Assembly: GCA_020184695.1 (NCBI GenBank)
Contig: JAANOX010000222.1
Span: forward strand, 1-6,991
Direction of reading: 5' to 3'
From: Histomonas meleagridis 2922-C6/04-290x
Taxonomy: Eukaryota > Protista > Parabasalia
Length of the DNA: 6,991 nucleotides
Shown here one piece after another: positions 3 to 6,990 of the stretch. Every line of letters begins with the position of its first letter. Position 1 is the first letter of the stretch. Made by a program: the position numbers and the translations under genes. The notes under the pieces are model-generated. The model saw only the letters and a list, made by a program, of their open reading frames with translations, was not told the origin of the DNA and searched no databases.

Positions 3-437
3 TCAGAATATAAAATAAATTACGCCGCTGTTGATTTTAAATATAATCATAATACAACAGTGAAGATAGACAAACCAACAAATAAACCTATACTTCATAA
101 TAATATTCTTGTCGGCGTTAAATTTTATGATAAGAATTTAAAACTTCTTGAATCAGTAAATTTAAAATTTACCGATAACATTCTTACTAAAACATATAAA
201 AAGAAACTTGTAAATATTGCTCCTGCAGAATTAAATAATAAATTTATGAAAGCCAGAAATGATATTGTCAAGAAGATCACAAACGAACTTGTTGAGAAAC
301 GTGAAGAAATCGATAATAGAATTATATCATTAAATGCATATATTGGTAATCAAAATATAGCAATTTCGAAAGAGTTTGAAGGAGAAAAAATAACTTTTCC
401 GGAAAATACAAACAATAAGAAATCGTTTGATATGTAA
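3..437 (+). CDS. 5'-partial hypothetical protein (C-terminal ~144 aa of a gene starting upstream of the window)
   Basis: The frame of ORF 60..437 is open back to base 3 (SEYKINYAAVDFKYNHNTTVKIDKP...), so GTG at 60 is probably not the start. It ends ATG TAA A. No recognisable domain. Confidence 0.6.
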   Translation, partial: SEYKINYAAVDFKYNHNTTVKIDKPTNKPILHNNILVGVKFYDKNLKLLESVNLKFTDNILTKTYKKKLVNIAPAELNNKFMKARNDIVKKITNELVEKREEIDNRIISLNAYIGNQNIAISKEFEGEKITFPENTNNKKSFDM

Positions 438-1138: not shown

Positions 1139-1293
1139 CAACCGTCATTTTTCTCCGTCCGTTAATTTTTGTTAAATTTTAAACGAAAAACGTTTAAAAA
1201 AAAATTTTTGAAATCCGTTAAAAAGTTTATTTTTTACAACTTACTTTTTCAGCGGTTGTTCAAATTTTTCAACCGTCCTTTTTTCCGTCCGTT
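1139..1293. repeat. Dispersed direct repeat CAACCGTC-N7/8-CCGTCCGTT (1139-1163, 1270-1293)
   Basis: Read directly from the sequence. Confidence 0.8.
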
Positions 1294-1342: not shown

Positions 1343-1423
1343 GACATGTTATATGAAATGAAAAGACATGTTATGCGAAATGAATTTTTCGGAAATGTTA
1401 TGAAAAGACATGTTATATGAAAT
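1343..1423. repeat. GACATGTTAT repeat x3 (1343, 1365, 1407)
   Basis: Three copies. The last lies inside the left arm and its reverse complement occupies the last bases of the window (ATAACATGTC near 6976-6985). Confidence 0.85.
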
Positions 1424-1681
1424 TATAAAAAAGTGGTTCCACAAAAAAATTCAATGTCGCTGTATCTCGAACCAACGATCTTTACAAAAAAAGTGACACT
1501 CGAAAAGTGACACAAAATTTCTGAGGGTTAAAAAAATAAAAAAGTGAACCCTTTTTTTGAACCCTCAACGAAACGAAGTAAATTAACATTTTTCGGATGA
1601 TTTTACAAAATAAAAAATTCATGAAACTTTACGGATTATTATAAAACTTAGTTTAAATAATTTATTTTTTTGTCATATTCT

Positions 1682-2009
1682 TTTTGCGTTAAATCCTTCA
1701 AAAAATGCTTATTTTCTCCGATTCGTTGAGGGTTCAAAAAAAGGGTTAAAAAATCACCTTTGAAAATTAAAAGGTACTTTTTACATTCAAAATCTCAGTT
1801 AATAACAACTTTAAGCTCCAAACACTAAAATCCACATAGGATTAACAACAAATTCTTACCGATATATCAACCGTCAACTTTTGCGTTAAATCCTTCAAAA
1901 AATGCTTATTTTCTCCGTTTCGTTGAGGGTTCAAAAAAAGGGTTAAAAAATCACCTTTGAAAATTAAAAGGTACTTTTTACATTCACAACCTCAGTTAAT
2001 AACAACTTT
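1682..2009. repeat. 131-bp internal direct repeat x2 (1682-1812, 1879-2009); mirrored at 5895-6025 and ~6097-6225
   Basis: TTTTGCGTTAAATCC...CAGTTAATAACAACTTT with a 197-bp period and 3 mismatches between the left-arm copies. Confidence 0.95.
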
Positions 2010-2137
2010 CCACATAGCATTACGACAACTCATCCGTTATCATCATCAGCTCCAGTAAACATGCAATATTCACGTCAAATCACTAAAATGGAGAAACTCA
2101 TTCAGCTTTTCCGAATTTCCTTTAGCTAATAACTTTT

Positions 2138-2161
2138 TTAGTTAGTTAGTTAGTTAGTTAG
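2138..2161. repeat. (TTAG)6 microsatellite; mirrored as (CTAA)6 at 5743-5766
   Basis: Counted directly in both arms. Confidence 0.95.
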
Positions 2162-2290
2162 TTTGTCATGCCTCACACATTTTAAATATAAATGTCATCA
2201 TGAATTTAAATATATTTTATTACTTTCAATCAAAACCAACCGATTTATGATAATTCAATCGATTTTAGCCGTTCATCCTTTAGTTTATGT

Positions 2291-2350
2291 AGCGCGAGTG
2301 GGAGCGAGTGCGTAGCACGAAGCTCACATAGCGCTGTGTGTGTGTGTGTG
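2291..2350 (+). other. GC-rich imperfect subterminal hairpin followed by a (TG)8 terminus; mirrored at 5555-5614
   Basis: AGCGC/GCGCT, GAGC/GCTC and GTGC-GTA-GCAC pairings, immediately followed by TG x8 (2335-2350). Confidence 0.75.
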
Positions 2351-3801
2351 GTATACAATCTGTTGTAGATGTATTTGAGGTATATATACCATTTTCTTTT
2401 AATGAGAAAACATTACCTGTTAAAAATACTGGTGAACCAATTTGAAATTGTATTAAGTCTTCTGAAACAGGAGCATTATGGATAATAGTTGTATTTATTT
2501 GTTCAAGACCTCCAGTTCCTTCGAATGTATTAAATGTAGTTGCAATATAATATATTTTACTATATGTATCAGAAAAGGTACCATTATCTTGTTTCTTTTG
2601 TGTTACAGATTCAAAATATAATCTTCCATATTTTTTATCTTCAGTAGGTGTACATCCATAAATTCTCCATAATAATTGATATGTATTACCTGATTCTTCA
2701 ATTATACTGTGAAATAAAGTTAATTTAGTAGATTCTAAACTATCAAATTGACCAGTTTTGGATTTTATATTTCCTATATTATCAATACCATTAGTTGTTA
2801 CAGAGTACATAATTTTAGAGCAATTTAAGTTAGTACAACCTAATGAATCAGAAGCTGCTGAGTAATAAAAACCATCGCAACCTTTTAGTGTTGGTATAAA
2901 GTCCATAACATTCCCTTTACATTGTATTCTAAAACTATAATCATTTTCATATCCATCACTAGTATGCATATCTATATAAGGACCTGTTTTTAAAACACCA
3001 TCGTTTTTAATAACTGCAATTGAAGGAACACTAATATTTAAATTTGAATCTGAAGGAGATGAATTTAAAGCAAAACCATTAATTGTTGAACAATGAATAT
3101 CTTCTGTATTTGAACCTATAGGAATATCTGTTAAATCATTATAACTATGTGTATGATTTGATGCAGCATATTTTGTATCATGATTATGATCTTTTGAAGC
3201 ATACTCAGGATGTGTATGATCAATCAATGCATATCTAGTATCATGATAATGTTCTACAGTTAGTTGTATCTACATTATTAATAGTTGCACATTGAATATT
3301 TCCATTACTTCCAAAACTTAATAATGAACCAGTTTTTGATTTAAAATCTAATGAATTAGTATTAGCAGTTATTCTCCATGTATTATCTTTATCATAATCT
3401 GCATTATTATGCATATCAATATATTGTCCAACTTCTACAACACCATCTTCTTTTAATGTGATAATAGCTGGAACATATAATTTTGTATCCCATTTACCAC
3501 CTTCTGCTGTTGACAATTGAAAACCATTTAATGAAGTAACTTGTACATTTCCATTTACTGTTAAATCATTATTTATTGTATTATGTGTATGACTTTTTGT
3601 AGAATATTTTTCATCTGATTGCGATTTATTATAATATAATTGTGGGATTGTAATCGAAGTTATAGTATTAAGTTTTTCTGTTATTTGATCATTTGTAGAA
3701 TAATTTTCTAAAACTTTTTGTAAGTCATCTTTATCAATAATTTCAGGAGCAGCAATAACATTAGTTTTTATACCTTTCGTAGCATTCTCAATACTAAACA
3801 T
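2351..3801 (-). pseudogene. Phage-tail-fibre-like protein, frameshifted at ~3261 and 3'-truncated at 2351 (joins ORFs 3241..3801 and 2280..3227)
   Basis: The second ORF's frame extends upstream of its TTG as TVEHYHDTRYALIDHTHPEYA, overlapping the first ORF's end, so one net frameshift joins them. There are five HxH repeats and a duplicated VP.I..(L/I)K.DGV...G.YIDMH module. After ...TTDCIP the frame reads into the (CA)n repeat (HTHTQRY...). Confidence 0.75.
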
Positions 3802-3805
3802 TGAT

Positions 3806-3814
3806 AAAAAATGA
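3806..3814 (-). promoter_or_regulatory. Possible parabasalid-type initiator (Inr) TCATTTTTT upstream of the fibre ATG
   Basis: TCATTTT fits the Trichomonas Inr consensus TCA(+1)Y(T/A), with the A 11 nt before ATG 3801. The upstream gene ends in TAAA. This is a short AT-rich motif, so a chance match is possible. Confidence 0.4.
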
Positions 3815-3821
3815 TTTTTAT

Positions 3822-4166
3822 TTAATAAATTAATAATAATTCTAACATAAAATATTCTGGATCAATTTCTTTACCATTCATTTCTTTAAACCATATTTTA
3901 AAATTTTGGTTTTTCTACTTTTTATATTCATATTTCTTATATTTAGTTCTATTTTCATTCGTATAAATACAAAAATAATCTTCATAATGATCACGTTCAA
4001 TGAAATCAGCATGCATTGAAACATCAGATACTAAATAATCCTTAAATTTACACTTACATTGTTGTACTACTATATATCTAGGATTTTGAGAATCCACAAA
4101 TTCAGGCGGAAAACGGTTTTCTTTTTGTGAAGTACAAAAATACGTTTTAGTTACAGGTTTAAGCAT
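3822..4166 (-). pseudogene. ~114-aa virus-like protein with one in-frame TAG (3917-3915); possibly a small single-jelly-roll/penton-like protein
   Basis: After the TAG the same frame continues KNQNFKIWFKEMNGKEIDPEYFMLELLLIY-TAA, stopping 20 nt before the next ATG. The C-terminal pattern (hydrophobic strand, G..I, F.LEL.L) resembles Polinton-type minor capsid C-termini; that assignment is tentative. Confidence 0.65.
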
Positions 4167-4428
4167 TTATAAAAATAAAGTTTGCCATGAGACCTAACAA
4201 TAACCGTCACTTTTTGACTACTAACCTCTGACCAAATATTAATTGGGGACAATTCGTGTTGGTTATGTGAGGTTTTTGATAGTTTTATGCGAAAAGTGGT
4301 GCTAAAAGTGCTATCGTTCCTATCAAAAAGTTTCGCGTTCTCTCAAAATTGAATGTGCATTCAAATTTTCAGACGAATTATATGGCTCACAAAAATCATT
4401 TCGATTTTTGTTGCGAGCGGAGCGAGCA

Positions 4429-4511
4429 CACTCGGGGATTGGAGGGGTCTGAGGCCTCGGAGGTCCGAAGAACACCTCCGGAGGCCGAAGACCCCGGAAA
4501 TCTCCCCAGTG
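4429..4511. other. 83-nt GC-rich imperfect hairpin
   Basis: Pairings: CACT/AGTG, GGGGA/TCCCC, GGGGTCT(4444-4450)/AGACCCC(4489-4495), GGCCTC/GAGGCC, GGAGGT/ACCTCC; 9-nt loop. Confidence 0.9.
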
Positions 4512-4520
4512 AAAAACTTA

Positions 4521-4599
4521 AGGTCGGGAATGATCACGAGGACCCTATGTGCCCCGGCCCCGGCGGCGCCCCTAGGGTCCTCGTGATCATTCCCGACCT
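4521..4599. repeat. Perfect 27-bp inverted repeat with a 25-nt GC-rich spacer
   Basis: AGGTCGGGAATGATCACGAGGACCCTA (4521-4547) and TAGGGTCCTCGTGATCATTCCCGACCT (4573-4599). Confidence 0.98.
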
Positions 4600-4649
4600 C
4601 ATTATATACCTACCAGCTTGAATTGTTGCGTTTTTATTTTTTAATAAAT

Positions 4650-5186
4650 CTATATCACCTTTATATTGAGTTTTTTTATTCTGCCAAAAGCTTTTGCGTA
4701 ACGTTTAGTTTCTTGTTGAGCTTTGTTTGCTAATTCATGCCGATGTTCAATCTCTCTTTCTGCCACTTCATGTTTTTGCTTTTCTTCATTATACTTTGCT
4801 TCAGCAGCTTTTGTCGCTTTTTTCATATCTTTTTCTTTTTCATCCGAATTCTTTTTTCTTGCTAATTCATCTTGTTTCTCTCTCCGCGTATCATTAATTT
4901 GTTGTTGACGAACATCGTTTTGATTTCTCATATTATGTATTGCGTCAAGATTTACGTTTTGTGGCGTTTGTGATAAAGCAACAGGAAGAAATGGATTTTG
5001 TAAATTTGCCATCATTTGTGACCTAGCAGAATTGGAATTTTGATTATTCGGTGAAGGAAGAATATTTGCTCTTACCGAAGCGTTAGGATTAAATGTTGGA
5101 GCTTGAGTAATTAGTCGATGCCTTAATCCGCGTTTAACATTTTTCTTTGTTTTTCTGATTCATCGTTTAATTGTTTTCTTTGCCAT
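4650..5186 (-). pseudogene. Basic N-terminus / coiled-coil hypothetical protein (~178 aa) with in-frame TGA at codon 9 (5162-5160)
   Basis: ATG at 5186 gives MAKKTIKR*IRKTKKNVKRGLRHRL...SARSQ, in frame with ORF 4650..5015. It ends at TAG 4652-4650, or at TAA 4643-4641 if that TAG is also internal. Confidence 0.65.
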
Positions 5187-5210
5187 TTAATTATAGATAA
5201 AAATATTGAT

Positions 5211-5555
5211 TCATAAGTATTGAACTCTTGCTCTTCATCCTCTTTGTATCGGCACATTATAAACTTGTTCTTGAGGTTCTGACGAGACTATTTCTTCCTT
5301 TTGCTCAAAACCTTGCTCGTCATTTCCTGTTTGTTCATCCGAAGGAATTTCCTCAGCATCAACGTAAATATCATTAATTAAATTTTTATATTTCTTCTTA
5401 AGCTATTTATGCTTACCTGTTGATTTATCTAATCTAGAATTTAATTCAATTATATGCTCCATTAATAGCTGGTCATTTGATATATAAACTTTACCGTCAG
5501 AATTATTTTTAATTACTTTTTGACTTACCGTTGAAGTTTTTGATTTCTTCGCTAA
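5211..5555 (-). pseudogene. 5'-truncated hypothetical protein (coiled coil plus acidic tail) with in-frame TAG (5405-5403) and TGA (5237-5235)
   Basis: A 115-codon frame not shown in the ORF track: LAKKSKTSTVSQKV...NDQLLMEHIIELNSRLDKSTGKHK*LKKKYKNLINDIYVDAEE...PIQRG*RARVQYL*. It has no start codon and begins at the (CA)n junction. Confidence 0.65.
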
Positions 5556-6990
5556 CACACACACACACAGCGCTATGTGAGCTTCGTGCTACGCACTCGC
5601 TCCCACCCGCGCTACATAAACTAAAGGATGAACGGTGTAAACGCGATTGATTTTCATAAATCGGTTGGTTTTGATTGAAAGTAATAAAATATATTTAAAT
5701 TCATGATGACATTTATATTTAAAATGTGTGATGCATGACAAACTAACTAACTAACTAACTAACTAAAAAAGTTATTAGCTAAAGGAAATTCGGAAAAGCT
5801 GAATGAGTTTCTCCATTTTAGTGATTTGACGTGAATATTGCATGTTTACTGGAGCTGATGATGATAACGGATGAGTTGTCGTAATGCTATGTGGAAAGTT
5901 GTTATTAACTGAGGTTGTGAATGTAAAAAGTACCTTTTAATTTTCAAAGGTGATTTTTTAACCCTTTTTTTGAACCCTCAACGAAACGGAGAAAATAAGC
6001 ATTTTTTGAAGGATTTAACGCAAAAGTTGACGGTTGATTTATCGGAAAGAATTTAATGTTTTGATGTTAATCCGTGGAAAGTTGTGTTTGGAGCTTAAAG
6101 CTGTTATTAACTGAAGGTTTTTATCAAAAAAGTACCTTTTAAAAATCAAAGGTTAAAAAATCACTTTTTTTTAACCCTCAACGAAACGGAGAAAATGAGC
6201 ATTTTTTGAAGGCTTTAACGCAAAAAGAATATGACAAAAAAATAAATTATTTAAACTAAGCTTATCATAACAGATTGTTAATTTTCTAAATTTAATGTCG
6301 TTCCAGAAGAAGAAAGAATCAAGCTCAGGATCATAATAATAATCTTCTAATTGATGATTGCCATACTTATTAACTTCAATTGAATCTTCATTGATTTCGT
6401 CGAAGAATTCAAAAGCTCTATCGCTATATGAAGAAGTATTTTTTAGATTTTCTGACTGATAAACCCAACGGAGATTTGAAACGTGATTGTTTGAACGATT
6501 GTGATCTATGTGATCTATAAAAGGTTTGTCATCAGGATTTGGAATAAATTGTAATGCAACAATACGATGTTTAAGATATAATTTTCTGTTTAATTTACAT
6601 GCAATATATCCGGTAGTTTTAATTGAAAATTTTTTTATGACTTTTTTATCACGTTTTCTTCTTATGGCATTCGGATATTCTGTGTTAATCTCATAATTTC
6701 GGTTCACAACACAAATTTTCCAACTCATATTTTTATTAATAATAAAAAAATAAATTTTTTTGAAATTAGCTTTAATTTTTTATTTTGTAAAATCATCCGA
6801 AAAATGTTAATTTACTTCGTTTCGTTGAGGGTTCGAAAAAAGGGTTCACTTTTTTATTTTTTTAACCCTCGAAAATTTTGTGTCACTTTTCGAGTGTCAC
6901 TTTTTTGTATAGGTCGTTGGTTCGAGATACAGCGACATTGAATTTTTTTGTAAAACCACTTTTTTATAATTTCATATAACATGTCTTTTC
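5555..6990 (-). mobile_element. Right arm of long inverted repeat; HNH-carrying copy ending in (TG)7T on the - strand
   Basis: Reverse-complement match to 1402-2350, with ~6261-6773 (HNH gene and its 5' flank) replacing 1620-1646. The match runs to the window edge, so the outer boundary is not seen. Confidence 0.8.
6171..6728 (-). CDS. HNH endonuclease (HNH_3 / homing-endonuclease type) with a probably non-native C-terminus
   Basis: Residues 54-97 read HRIVALQFIPNPDDKPFIDHIDHNRSNNHVSNLRWVYQSENLKN, the canonical HR.VA..F.PNP....DH.D.N..NN...NLRW...EN motif with intact H and N residues. Residues 157-185 are translated from sequence shared with the left arm. Confidence 0.9.
   Translation of the reverse strand: MSWKICVVNRNYEINTEYPNAIRRKRDKKVIKKFSIKTTGYIACKLNRKLYLKHRIVALQFIPNPDDKPFIDHIDHNRSNNHVSNLRWVYQSENLKNTSSYSDRAFEFFDEINEDSIEVNKYGNHQLEDYYYDPELDSFFFWNDIKFRKLTICYDKLSLNNLFFCHILFALKPSKNAHFLRFVEG

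Follow-up and report, generated by a model that had tools for sequence, protein, structure and literature searches.

The 6,991-nucleotide stretch of Histomonas meleagridis DNA analyzed here (the window) is probably a pile-up of broken Polinton-like virus (PLV) copies in the nuclear genome of the parasite. The two inverted arms of the window would be outward-extending end regions of one element family, M. The 3.2 kb between them would consist of the end of a second element, F (2350-4614), cut at the left arm, and a third, PLV-like gene fragment (4615-5554), cut at the right arm.

By its closest matches, the window belongs to the H. meleagridis nuclear genome. Three H. meleagridis loci, situated beside host kinase, ankyrin and MCM-binding genes, match its DNA at 94-96% identity, and these three loci are 90-96% identical among themselves. 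An organelle or phage origin was rejected in view of the matches to Histomonas nuclear loci; a search for phage DNA gave no match, and no tRNA was found in the window. Such an origin had been considered because of the 27% GC content of the window and its GC-rich cluster.

The region 2350-4614 appears to represent the last 2.3 kb of a Polinton-like virus element, F. All its features lie on the minus strand: a broken fibre ("minor tail protein"-like) gene (2350-3801), an 83-aa ORF (3915-4166) and the GC-rich terminal repeat of the element (4200-4614), with the tip at 4614. The fibre ORF is 87% identical to a 530-aa H. meleagridis protein, P0001. In the tblastn comparison, the gene was recovered in two frames without stops inside the HSPs, and coverage extended only to residue 429 of 530; the gene has one frameshift and has lost about its last 100 codons at the left arm. 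Its likeness to phage tail proteins is confined to short fibre repeats, and no relatives of the protein were found in IMG/VR. The 83-aa ORF is 76-90% conserved in loci L001, L002 and L003, and had no Pfam or PHROG match. The terminal repeat, where the composition of the window peaks, opens with a (GGTA)2 reiteration, behind which comes a 36/36-nt palindrome (4521-4599), for which a hairpin of -42.5 kcal/mol (z = -11.5) was calculated. An exact-pattern scan of IMG/VR for the palindrome found no match, and the only Rfam hits on the window were sub-threshold miRNA matches on this palindrome.

The capsid gene of F is located in other copies of the element, outside the window. An AF2 model for the P0136/P0139 family (pLDDT of the modelled member 89) has the double-jelly-roll major capsid fold (best E-value 1e-14, probability 1.0), with matches to the capsid proteins of iridovirus, PBCV-1, Sputnik and mavirus at E-values of 1e-14 to 1e-10. 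DNA_pol_B_2 was detected in two ORFs of locus L019 (E = 2.7e-12 and 1.8e-13), and 43 relatives of this polymerase are found on IMG/VR contigs of 6-25 kb, mostly 14-25 kb. F loci also match the Pox_A32-positive ATPase of the human-gut element L065 (tblastn, E = 1e-8 to 1e-9). In several copies the ATPase region of F seems to be disrupted, as no ORF of at least 100 aa covers it; the region is common, together with other F genes, to human-gut elements with a Pox_A32 ATPase. An identical F tip occurs in the window, L001, L016 and L018, each time with a different flank, and in L018 the GC-rich piece is present at both ends in opposite orientation. About 19 members over two strains make up one F protein cluster. 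The double-jelly-roll capsid, the A32/FtsK-type ATPase and the terminal inverted repeats with a defined tip are the features by which we place F among the PLVs.

No integrase was found in the F copies read. The only ORFs with an rve domain belong to separate transposons of about 1.7 kb, which have their own 85-nt terminal inverted repeats (TIRs) and match the published IS481EU family; the possibility that an rve integrase near F is its own was therefore rejected. Polintons are defined by polymerase B plus rve integrase (PMC5499653). This pairing of protein-primed polymerase B and rve in a single element, which marks a Polinton/Maverick in the strict sense, was not seen in F. A reading of the arm together with the GC-rich segment as a 2.8-kb TIR of F was also rejected, given the sharp F tip, its four flanks and the existence of armless F copies.

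The neighbouring region, 4615-5554 on the minus strand, appears to be a gene-region fragment of another Polinton-like copy. It has lost its N-terminal part where it meets the arm, and at least one in-frame stop is present. The fragment includes ORFs of 121 and 53 aa and is homologous to a 221-aa protein of a human-gut element (tblastn to L065 9349-10014: 41% identity over 102 aa, E = 7e-11). Neither its DNA nor its translation matched any F locus.

The arms occupy 1402-2349 (left, plus strand) and 5555-6990 (right, minus strand). An earlier note on this DNA had described two related but non-identical arms facing each other, and the alignment agrees: 902 of 931 aligned positions match (about 97% identity), and exact inverted matches reach a length of 306 nt, compared with 12-18 nt in 20 shuffles. 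The chief difference is a segment of about 0.5 kb present in the right arm only. The left arm has two tandem units of about 197 bp (1682-1812 and 1879-2009), a (TTAG)6.5 tract (2138-2163), a subterminal hairpin and a terminal (TG)8. Along the minus strand, the right arm leads from an outer region through an HNH gene and units of about 200 bp to the hairpin and the (TG)n end. The same note had seen no transposase, integrase or recombinase; this held for the window ORFs scanned against Pfam and PHROG, none of which has such a domain. The HNH nuclease that it had placed inside one arm is indeed present as an HNH_3 ORF in the right arm, but the left arm is not free of the gene, as it keeps a 3' remnant. 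The outer boundary set at 1402 did not stand up, because the right arm continues up to the window's final base and 1402 is only the mirror of that edge. In locus L001, positions 8056-8719 are colinear with the window from 1637 down to 984 (71% identity), and the arm repeat family therefore reaches further out. The non-coding, repeat-rich stretch at 438-1401 is of the same repeat family as the arms, with tandem units of 13, 12, 39 and 22 bp. A match to window 1180-1284 is found at 74-178 of the metagenome contig L004 (85% identity), and an F element is inserted in L001 at a point equivalent to about window 960.

The arms are not confined to this site: two further copies are present in L001 and one in L004. 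In steps of 100 nt, the identity of an arm alternates between its partner in the window and the L001 copy, and the arm family appears to be dispersed and mosaic. Its non-coding sequence seems to be constrained, because it remains 75-89% identical to L004 although 61% of synonymous sites differ.

Outside the left arm, the window starts with the 3' 144 codons of a conserved gene of about 153 aa (3-437, plus strand), which we assign to the arm-bearing element M and which is truncated by the left window edge. Gut metagenomes yielded nine relatives of 135-169 aa, the best of them 91% identical; the family had no relatives in IMG/VR. A fold search with the AF2 model of the protein (pLDDT 72) gave no significant match. 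Its counterparts in human-gut contigs are arranged head-to-head with a Pox_A32-type ATPase gene and are close to protein-primed polymerase B. This position beside a packaging ATPase suggests that the arm-bearing element extends outward, as does the fact that two M ends face each other. In the proposed layout, the M end region would run inward from the 153-aa gene over about 1 kb of short tandem repeats to the HNH_3 gene within inverted repeats of 60-70 nt, and then over two units of about 200 bp to a small hairpin and a (TG)7-8 run, which would be the end of the family. The arms appear to be end regions of a repeated virus-like element family; the M copies seen were all partial, and (TG)n may be either a genome terminus or a recombination hot spot. 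The 153-aa gene occupies an internal and not a terminal place in F and in the human-gut relatives, which counts against this reading.

The two arms might alternatively be the product of a local inverted duplication. There would have been one original M end at the fibre gene; a break near 5554 would have folded back, primed on the (TG)n tract through CA/TG microhomology and copied the left arm in reverse, and later gene conversion would have blurred the identity. The right arm does start exactly at the microsatellite, the preceding base permits 1-3 nt of microhomology, and the arms are 98-100% identical over 1847-2146. However, the left arm at 1747-1846 is 97% identical to the L001 copy and only 77% identical to the right arm. 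The HNH lesions differ between the arms, the HNH-less form also occurs in a copy at another locus, and the same discrete end is found at other loci without an inverted partner. We therefore consider a local duplication unlikely.

The HNH_3 gene of the right arm is a damaged, homing-endonuclease-type gene with an ORF of 185 aa (6171-6728, minus strand). It matches positions 1-44 of 46 of Pfam HNH_3 (PF13392, E = 1.9e-10) and the PHROG HNH families (1.6e-22), and its closest relatives are metagenome proteins of 184-186 aa, with 77% and 57% identity. The solved structure nearest to an intact relative, P0005, is I-HmuI (1u3e, E = 2.4e-6); P0005 itself had only two weak, domain-level matches in IMG/VR. 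Alignment with the relatives in L004 and L001 shows that these have a longer native 3' end. In the right arm one deletion has removed this end, which is why the frame runs on into arm sequence. The left arm retains about the last 11 codons of the same gene and is therefore not HNH-free by origin. Among the copies, the right arm, the first L001 copy and L004 have the gene, and the left arm and the second L001 copy lack it. A catalytic domain together with presence or absence at the same site among homologous copies characterizes free-standing HNH homing endonucleases. We interpret the gene as such a free-standing homing-endonuclease gene, probably already resident in the ancestral arm, because it occupies the same position in L004 and L001, and probably once functional, because its dN/dS against L004 is 0.10. 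It would thus behave as a selfish homing-endonuclease gene that was formerly under purifying selection. The mosaic identity among arm copies is compatible with homing of the putative endonuclease, without being specific to it.

These properties raise the question of whether the arm is a self-contained HNH cassette, located downstream of the PLV 153-aa gene and spreading by homing, with (TG)n as the edge of the co-converted tract. The variable presence of the gene at one site, the inverted repeats of 60-70 nt around it and the mosaic identity among copies speak for a cassette, and so do related HNH genes in metagenome relatives, which sit between the polymerase B gene and the next gene. Homing requires homologous flanks, yet the (TG)n end adjoins five unrelated sequences. 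Moreover, the HNH-less form is a deletion derivative that retains the last codons of the gene, and not an empty target. A homing cassette is consequently a doubtful explanation of the arms.

The inner end is common to both arms and consists of a small hairpin followed by a (TG)7-8 / (CA) microsatellite. The last 200 nt or so of the arm are 99-100% identical in three copies, and the end adjoins five unrelated neighbours among the sequences reached. A discrete end with unrelated neighbours is what is expected of a PLV terminal inverted repeat, and a simple-repeat end fits a Polinton/Maverick-like replicon. In the window, the arm end cuts the fibre gene on the left and the second viral gene on the right. 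The (CA)n tract could also have been part of the fibre gene, coding for HxH repeats, but this was rejected, as intact fibre paralogs have no (CA)n at the junction point and L001 and L003 read straight through. A non-LTR or SINE-like 3' tail and a Helitron end were considered as well; no reverse transcriptase and no Rep, respectively, were present in any locus read, the structure is a misfit with Helitron termini, and both are kept as remote thoughts. Exact-pattern scans of IMG/VR and of the metagenome collection for the arm end gave no match. We think it improbable that the arm is an undescribed mobile unit of 1.6-2.3 kb, composed of the HNH gene in its 60-70-nt inverted repeats and the hairpin-plus-(TG)n end. 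If it were, it would move or join without flanking homology into virus-like elements and host DNA, and this would explain five unrelated neighbours at one same end.

The earlier note had offered two models. In the first, two copies of an undescribed HNH-encoding element of about 1.5 kb or longer form a cargo-carrying unit; with the 3.2 kb between them, this would be a composite transposon or a small TIR element. A unique segment flanked by inverted arms, in a window with no other recombinase, has the right shape for this. The 3.2 kb, which had been taken for one viral gene module, is viral-element sequence as proposed, but it comprises truncated gene pieces of two different elements, each severed precisely at an arm end, and is neither one module nor a cargo. 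The discrete arm ends are the inner ones and face inward. Arms elsewhere adjoin other DNA, F copies elsewhere lack arms, and in eight Histomonas loci (seven genomic places) arms and F are separate or otherwise arranged. The HNH copies are damaged in both arms, and Pfam and PHROG searches gave only HNH_3 and no transposase. Transposition of DNA is not a known activity of HNH nucleases. A cargo unit is thus very improbable. The second model, in which the arms are terminal inverted repeats of larger Polinton/Maverick-like elements with bodies extending outward, is partly supported. The ends are discrete and point inward, and a virus-element gene, the 153-aa gene with its relatives beside A32 packaging ATPase and protein-primed polymerase B, lies outside the left arm; an element-borne rve integrase was not found in the copies read. 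An assembly artefact, in which a chimeric or fold-back long read creates a false palindrome, is barely credible: Nanopore data underlie the published assemblies, for which a single chimeric contig has been reported (PMC8529796), but fold-back errors yield near-identical arms that meet at a point, and these arms differ by 3% and a 0.5-kb indel and have 3.2 kb of unique sequence between them.

For the preferred reading, a pile-up of broken virus copies, the following history may be proposed. M and F would have replicated or integrated as linear, protein-primed elements whose simple-repeat ends served initiation. Double-strand breaks and gene conversion among the copies could then have produced the mosaic arms and their head-to-head arrangement, and the HNH nuclease may have helped to cause these breaks. 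Two independent insertions just 3.2 kb apart would require a clustering tendency, a point that we count against this reading.

H. meleagridis is the cause of blackhead disease in poultry. The paper on its genome reported almost no mobile DNA, with interspersed repeats amounting to only 0.23%, and no viral DNA (PMC8529796). The window and its relatives point to the presence in this genome of at least two Polinton-like families that encode a capsid, with close kin in animal-gut and human-gut metagenomes, and would extend the known host range of such elements by one lineage. The window is also a worked example of how nested viral copies can mimic a composite transposon, and reveals no new mechanism of mobility.

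With bacterial composite transposons, in which two IS copies flank a cargo, the window shares the geometry alone: it has no transposase, its discrete ends point inward, its middle is truncated and the unit is not repeated in the eight loci. The HNH gene resembles I-HmuI of phage SPO1 (PDB 1u3e) and the intron-less homing genes of T4-like phages in its HNH_3 domain, small size and intergenic position. As with free-standing homing endonucleases in general, some related copies have the gene and others lack it, and in part of them it is decaying. In contrast to these, the putative endonuclease gene has no intron context, and its HNH-less copies are deletion derivatives and not naive targets. Hybrid rumen virophages from animal gut metagenomes (PMC4409740) may be a further related group. 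With the Maverick/Polinton elements of Trichomonas vaginalis, the elements described here share the host phylum, a protein-primed polymerase B, TIRs and the occurrence in multiple copies; they differ in that no element-borne rve was seen and that the copy number is in the tens and not in the thousands.

The closest parallel is with the endogenous PLVs of protists (PMC10120064, Bellas et al., 2023) and of cryptophytes in particular (PMC12220804). Free-standing HNH_3 genes, phage-like fibre genes, TIRs and nested insertions are all known from published PLVs (PMC12220804). Judging from its copies, F is likewise 12-17 kb in length. It has the double-jelly-roll capsid, the A32-type ATPase region, the protein-primed polymerase B, the phage-like fibre gene and the inverted terminal repeats of these viruses, and is similarly present in many copies that are decaying and nested. 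It differs from them in that the copies read yielded neither an integrase nor a recombinase, and in its GC-rich ends with a palindrome of 36-37-nt arms. M is distinguished by an end region with about 2 kb of conserved non-coding repeats and by the dinucleotide run at its end. A further difference is the host, which in this case is a parabasalid parasite of poultry.

The 6991-bp window (27% GC) contains two inverted arms, which a repeat finder and blastn placed at 1402-2349 (left) and 5555-6990 (right). In a global alignment, 902 of 931 aligned positions were identical, and the longest exact inverted match was 306 nt. As shuffled sequence gives only 12-18 nt, a chance origin of the arms was excluded, and the description of the arms in the earlier note as related but non-identical was confirmed. 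The right arm is about 0.5 kb longer than the left, and the surplus contains most of an HNH ORF. Since the right arm extends to the final base of the window, position 1402 is not a biological boundary. On the inward side, both arms stop at the same (TG)7-8 run. Each arm also carries a (TTAG)6.5 microsatellite (2138-2163 and 5741-5766), some 190 nt away from its (TG)n terminus.

A 315-aa ORF at 2280-3227 was 87% identical to a 530-aa H. meleagridis "minor tail protein". Three H. meleagridis loci (L001-L003) matched window positions 2350-4614 with 94-96% identity, the same range as found among these loci themselves, and were surrounded by ordinary host genes (kinase-Ras fusion, ankyrin, MCM-binding). 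The composition of the window is in keeping with the 28.7% GC of the published H. meleagridis genome (PMC8529796). Judging from the fibre ORF match, the identity to the three loci, their host gene neighbours and the composition, the window is almost certainly another copy within the H. meleagridis nuclear genome.

The multi-copy element, here called F, includes the fibre gene, an 83-aa ORF and a GC-rich segment. Its tip is sharp, starting with (GGTA)2 and followed 16 nt inward by a palindrome with 36-37-nt arms (folding energy -42.5 kcal/mol, z = -11.5). The identical tip was found with four unrelated flanks, at position 4614 of the window and in the H. meleagridis loci L001, L016 and L018. 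Sub-threshold Rfam matches to miRNA precursors (mir-3913, mir-5881) on both strands of 4518-4605 reflect the perfect hairpin of this palindrome, and miRNA genes were rejected for this region. The GC-rich segment is present at both ends of L018 in opposite orientation, and in L002/L016 it closes off an 11-kb body on the distal side, which indicates inverted terminal repeats about 0.5 kb long for F.

A protein-primed family-B polymerase (PF03175), split across two ORFs (7788-9997), was seen in a single F copy, L019. Its relatives on IMG/VR (n=43) reside on contigs of 6-25 kb, mostly 14-25 kb. Beside the F polymerase lies a member of a family of 232- to 563-aa proteins (507 representatives), and a confident model of one family member (pLDDT 89) matches major capsid proteins of the double-jelly-roll type from an iridovirus, PBCV-1, Sputnik and mavirus. 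F loci also have an A32-type ATPase region and two more genes in common with the human-gut elements described below. Polymerase, capsid fold, ATPase region, inverted ends and multiple copies together identify F as an endogenous Polinton-like virus (PLV), of which the window contains just the terminal 2.3 kb (2350-4614). A single F protein cluster had 19 members over the two sequenced strains. In none of the copies read did an ORF of at least 100 aa include the ATPase-like region, and F copies appear to be decayed for the most part.

A small transposon of about 1.7 kb adjoins F copies in L002 (4941-6666) and L017 (6646-7242), in the latter directly abutting a truncated F end; its TIRs measure 85 nt, it encodes an rve-type transposase, and it is in keeping with the H. 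meleagridis IS481EU families already published (PMC10045372). In L003, the F fibre gene is interrupted by a nested 2.3-kb insertion (11117-13456) that carries a winged-helix ORF and has terminal inverted repeats of 33 nt. Several F copies lie beside a tandem satellite made up of units of about 160-170 bp (L001 3469-4297, L017 14004-18498, L018 5458-5867), which also adjoins ankyrin-gene paralogs in L001 and L017. This suggests that the elements occupy repeat-rich neighbourhoods.

The fibre gene in the window has one frameshift and lacks about 100 final codons, and two intact fibre paralogs continue through the point of changeover from fibre to arm, where they have no (CA)n. The following 0.94 kb (4615-5554) had no match to any F locus. 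Its translation is homologous to a 221-aa protein found in the human-gut elements (41%, E 7e-11); the N-terminal part is absent at the right-arm junction, and at least one in-frame stop is present. This stretch is a piece of a further PLV-class element. Three virus-like sequence families converge in the window, the F tip and the arm ends being discrete. Each arm end cuts short a gene of another element, and the middle between the arms is no module.

The arm end, in which a small hairpin precedes (TG)7-8, occurred five times with five different neighbours: the interior of the fibre gene and the 221-like fragment in the window, unrelated flanking DNA without detectable relative among the loci read (L001), the interior of an HNH gene (also L001), and the end of the metagenome contig L004, where the hairpin is preserved with an altered inner stem. 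The arm family reaches well past 1402, as L001 is colinear with the window outward as far as 984; at the equivalent of about window 960, an F element is inserted into the arm-family sequence of L001. In consecutive 100-nt segments, the left and right arms were 95, 77, 98, 100, 100, 99, 94 and 100% identical, and the left arm and its L001 copy 87, 97, 93, 87, 93, 100, 99 and 100%. The earlier note had raised a one-off inverted duplication as a possibility that would count against its reading. The copies in L001 and L004 and the mosaic of identities argue that they are instead members of a dispersed, recombining family.

Pfam and PHROG searches of the window ORFs detected no enzyme domain other than HNH, bearing out the claim that an HNH nuclease in one arm is the sole enzyme. 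The ORF (6171-6728, minus strand) matched Pfam HNH_3 (E 1.9e-10) and several PHROG HNH families, and among solved structures the homing endonuclease I-HmuI came nearest, as judged from an intact relative. The most similar proteins, of 184-186 aa, are encoded on small contigs from gut metagenomes (77% and 57% identity). One of these contigs, L004, repeats the arm layout from window position ~1180 through the (TG)n end. In others (L009-L011, 57%), the HNH gene directly follows the 3' end of a protein-primed polymerase B gene, with a convergent gene next to it; in the HNH-free contig L065, the homologue of this convergent gene sits upstream of the polymerase, so that gene order around the polymerase varies among relatives. 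The dN/dS between the window and L004 HNH genes was 0.10 (149 codons), indicating that it stayed functional over most of its history. Set against these relatives, the right-arm gene has had its native 3' end removed by one deletion and its frame continues into arm sequence; in the left arm, one large deletion left just the final ~11 codons, and the HNH-less form of the left arm recurs in a second L001 arm copy. This gene is ancestral to the arm and now in decay.

Noncoding parts of the arm (1180-1284, 1610-1856, 2263-2349) were 75-89% identical to L004, while the adjacent HNH gene differs at 61% of its synonymous sites. This suggests that the noncoding arm repeats are constrained cis-acting sequence, apparently more so than silent coding sites. 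Inverted repeats of 60-70 nt bracket the HNH position (1547-1616 versus 1678-1747; 6777-6846 versus 5960-6025 and 6164-6229) and are also present in L004, where the two are more alike than either is to the window's copies, a sign of either concerted evolution or a constraint on pairing.

A conserved ORF of about 153 aa runs off the left edge of the window (3-437). Its relatives were found solely in gut metagenomes (best match 91% identical), and a scan with the family retrieved 26 human-gut contigs (L065-L090, 29% GC), most of the longer ones 96-98% identical to L068 across samples. The element that these contigs jointly describe (e.g. L068 1-15319, L082 1-9618) is PLV-like and roughly 16-20 kb long. 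Its genes encode a 1224-aa fibre protein, a D5-like primase-helicase, an 812-aa protein-primed polymerase, a capsid-protein homologue and the 221-aa protein, and the gene for its Pox_A32 ATPase lies head-to-head with the 153-aa gene. At its beginning, L082 has ~50 nt that recur as their reverse complement close to the right end of L068, a hint of TIRs on this element. That its host is a human-gut parabasalid is only a guess. A more distant version of the 153-aa gene is present in F too, adjoining the F polymerase and ATPase. From these two gene contexts, the family owning the arms, M, would be a second lineage of the PLV class with its body outside the window, and the arm a candidate terminal inverted repeat or recombination-prone internal boundary. 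The earlier proposal of Polinton-like ends extending outward was partly supported, with the arm as a candidate TIR.

These elements probably replicate from their ends through protein priming. Protein-primed replicons typically start with short terminal reiterations, to which (GGTA)2 and (TG)n may be compared. Two M copies may have arrived or recombined beside an older F insertion, giving the head-to-head layout, and gene conversion among arm copies, possibly begun by HNH-made breaks, could have produced the mosaic. The inverted arms might also have come from a fold-back duplication with the microsatellite as its priming site, but this would fit the mosaic identity pattern less well. The alternative of the earlier note, a composite transposon carrying cargo, was not supported, as the arm ends cut genes of other elements and the middle consists of fragments. 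In the preferred reading, PLV-class elements met and recombined in one place. Free-standing HNH_3 genes and phage-like fibre genes have been described for Polinton-like viruses, as have TIRs and nested insertions (PMC12220804).
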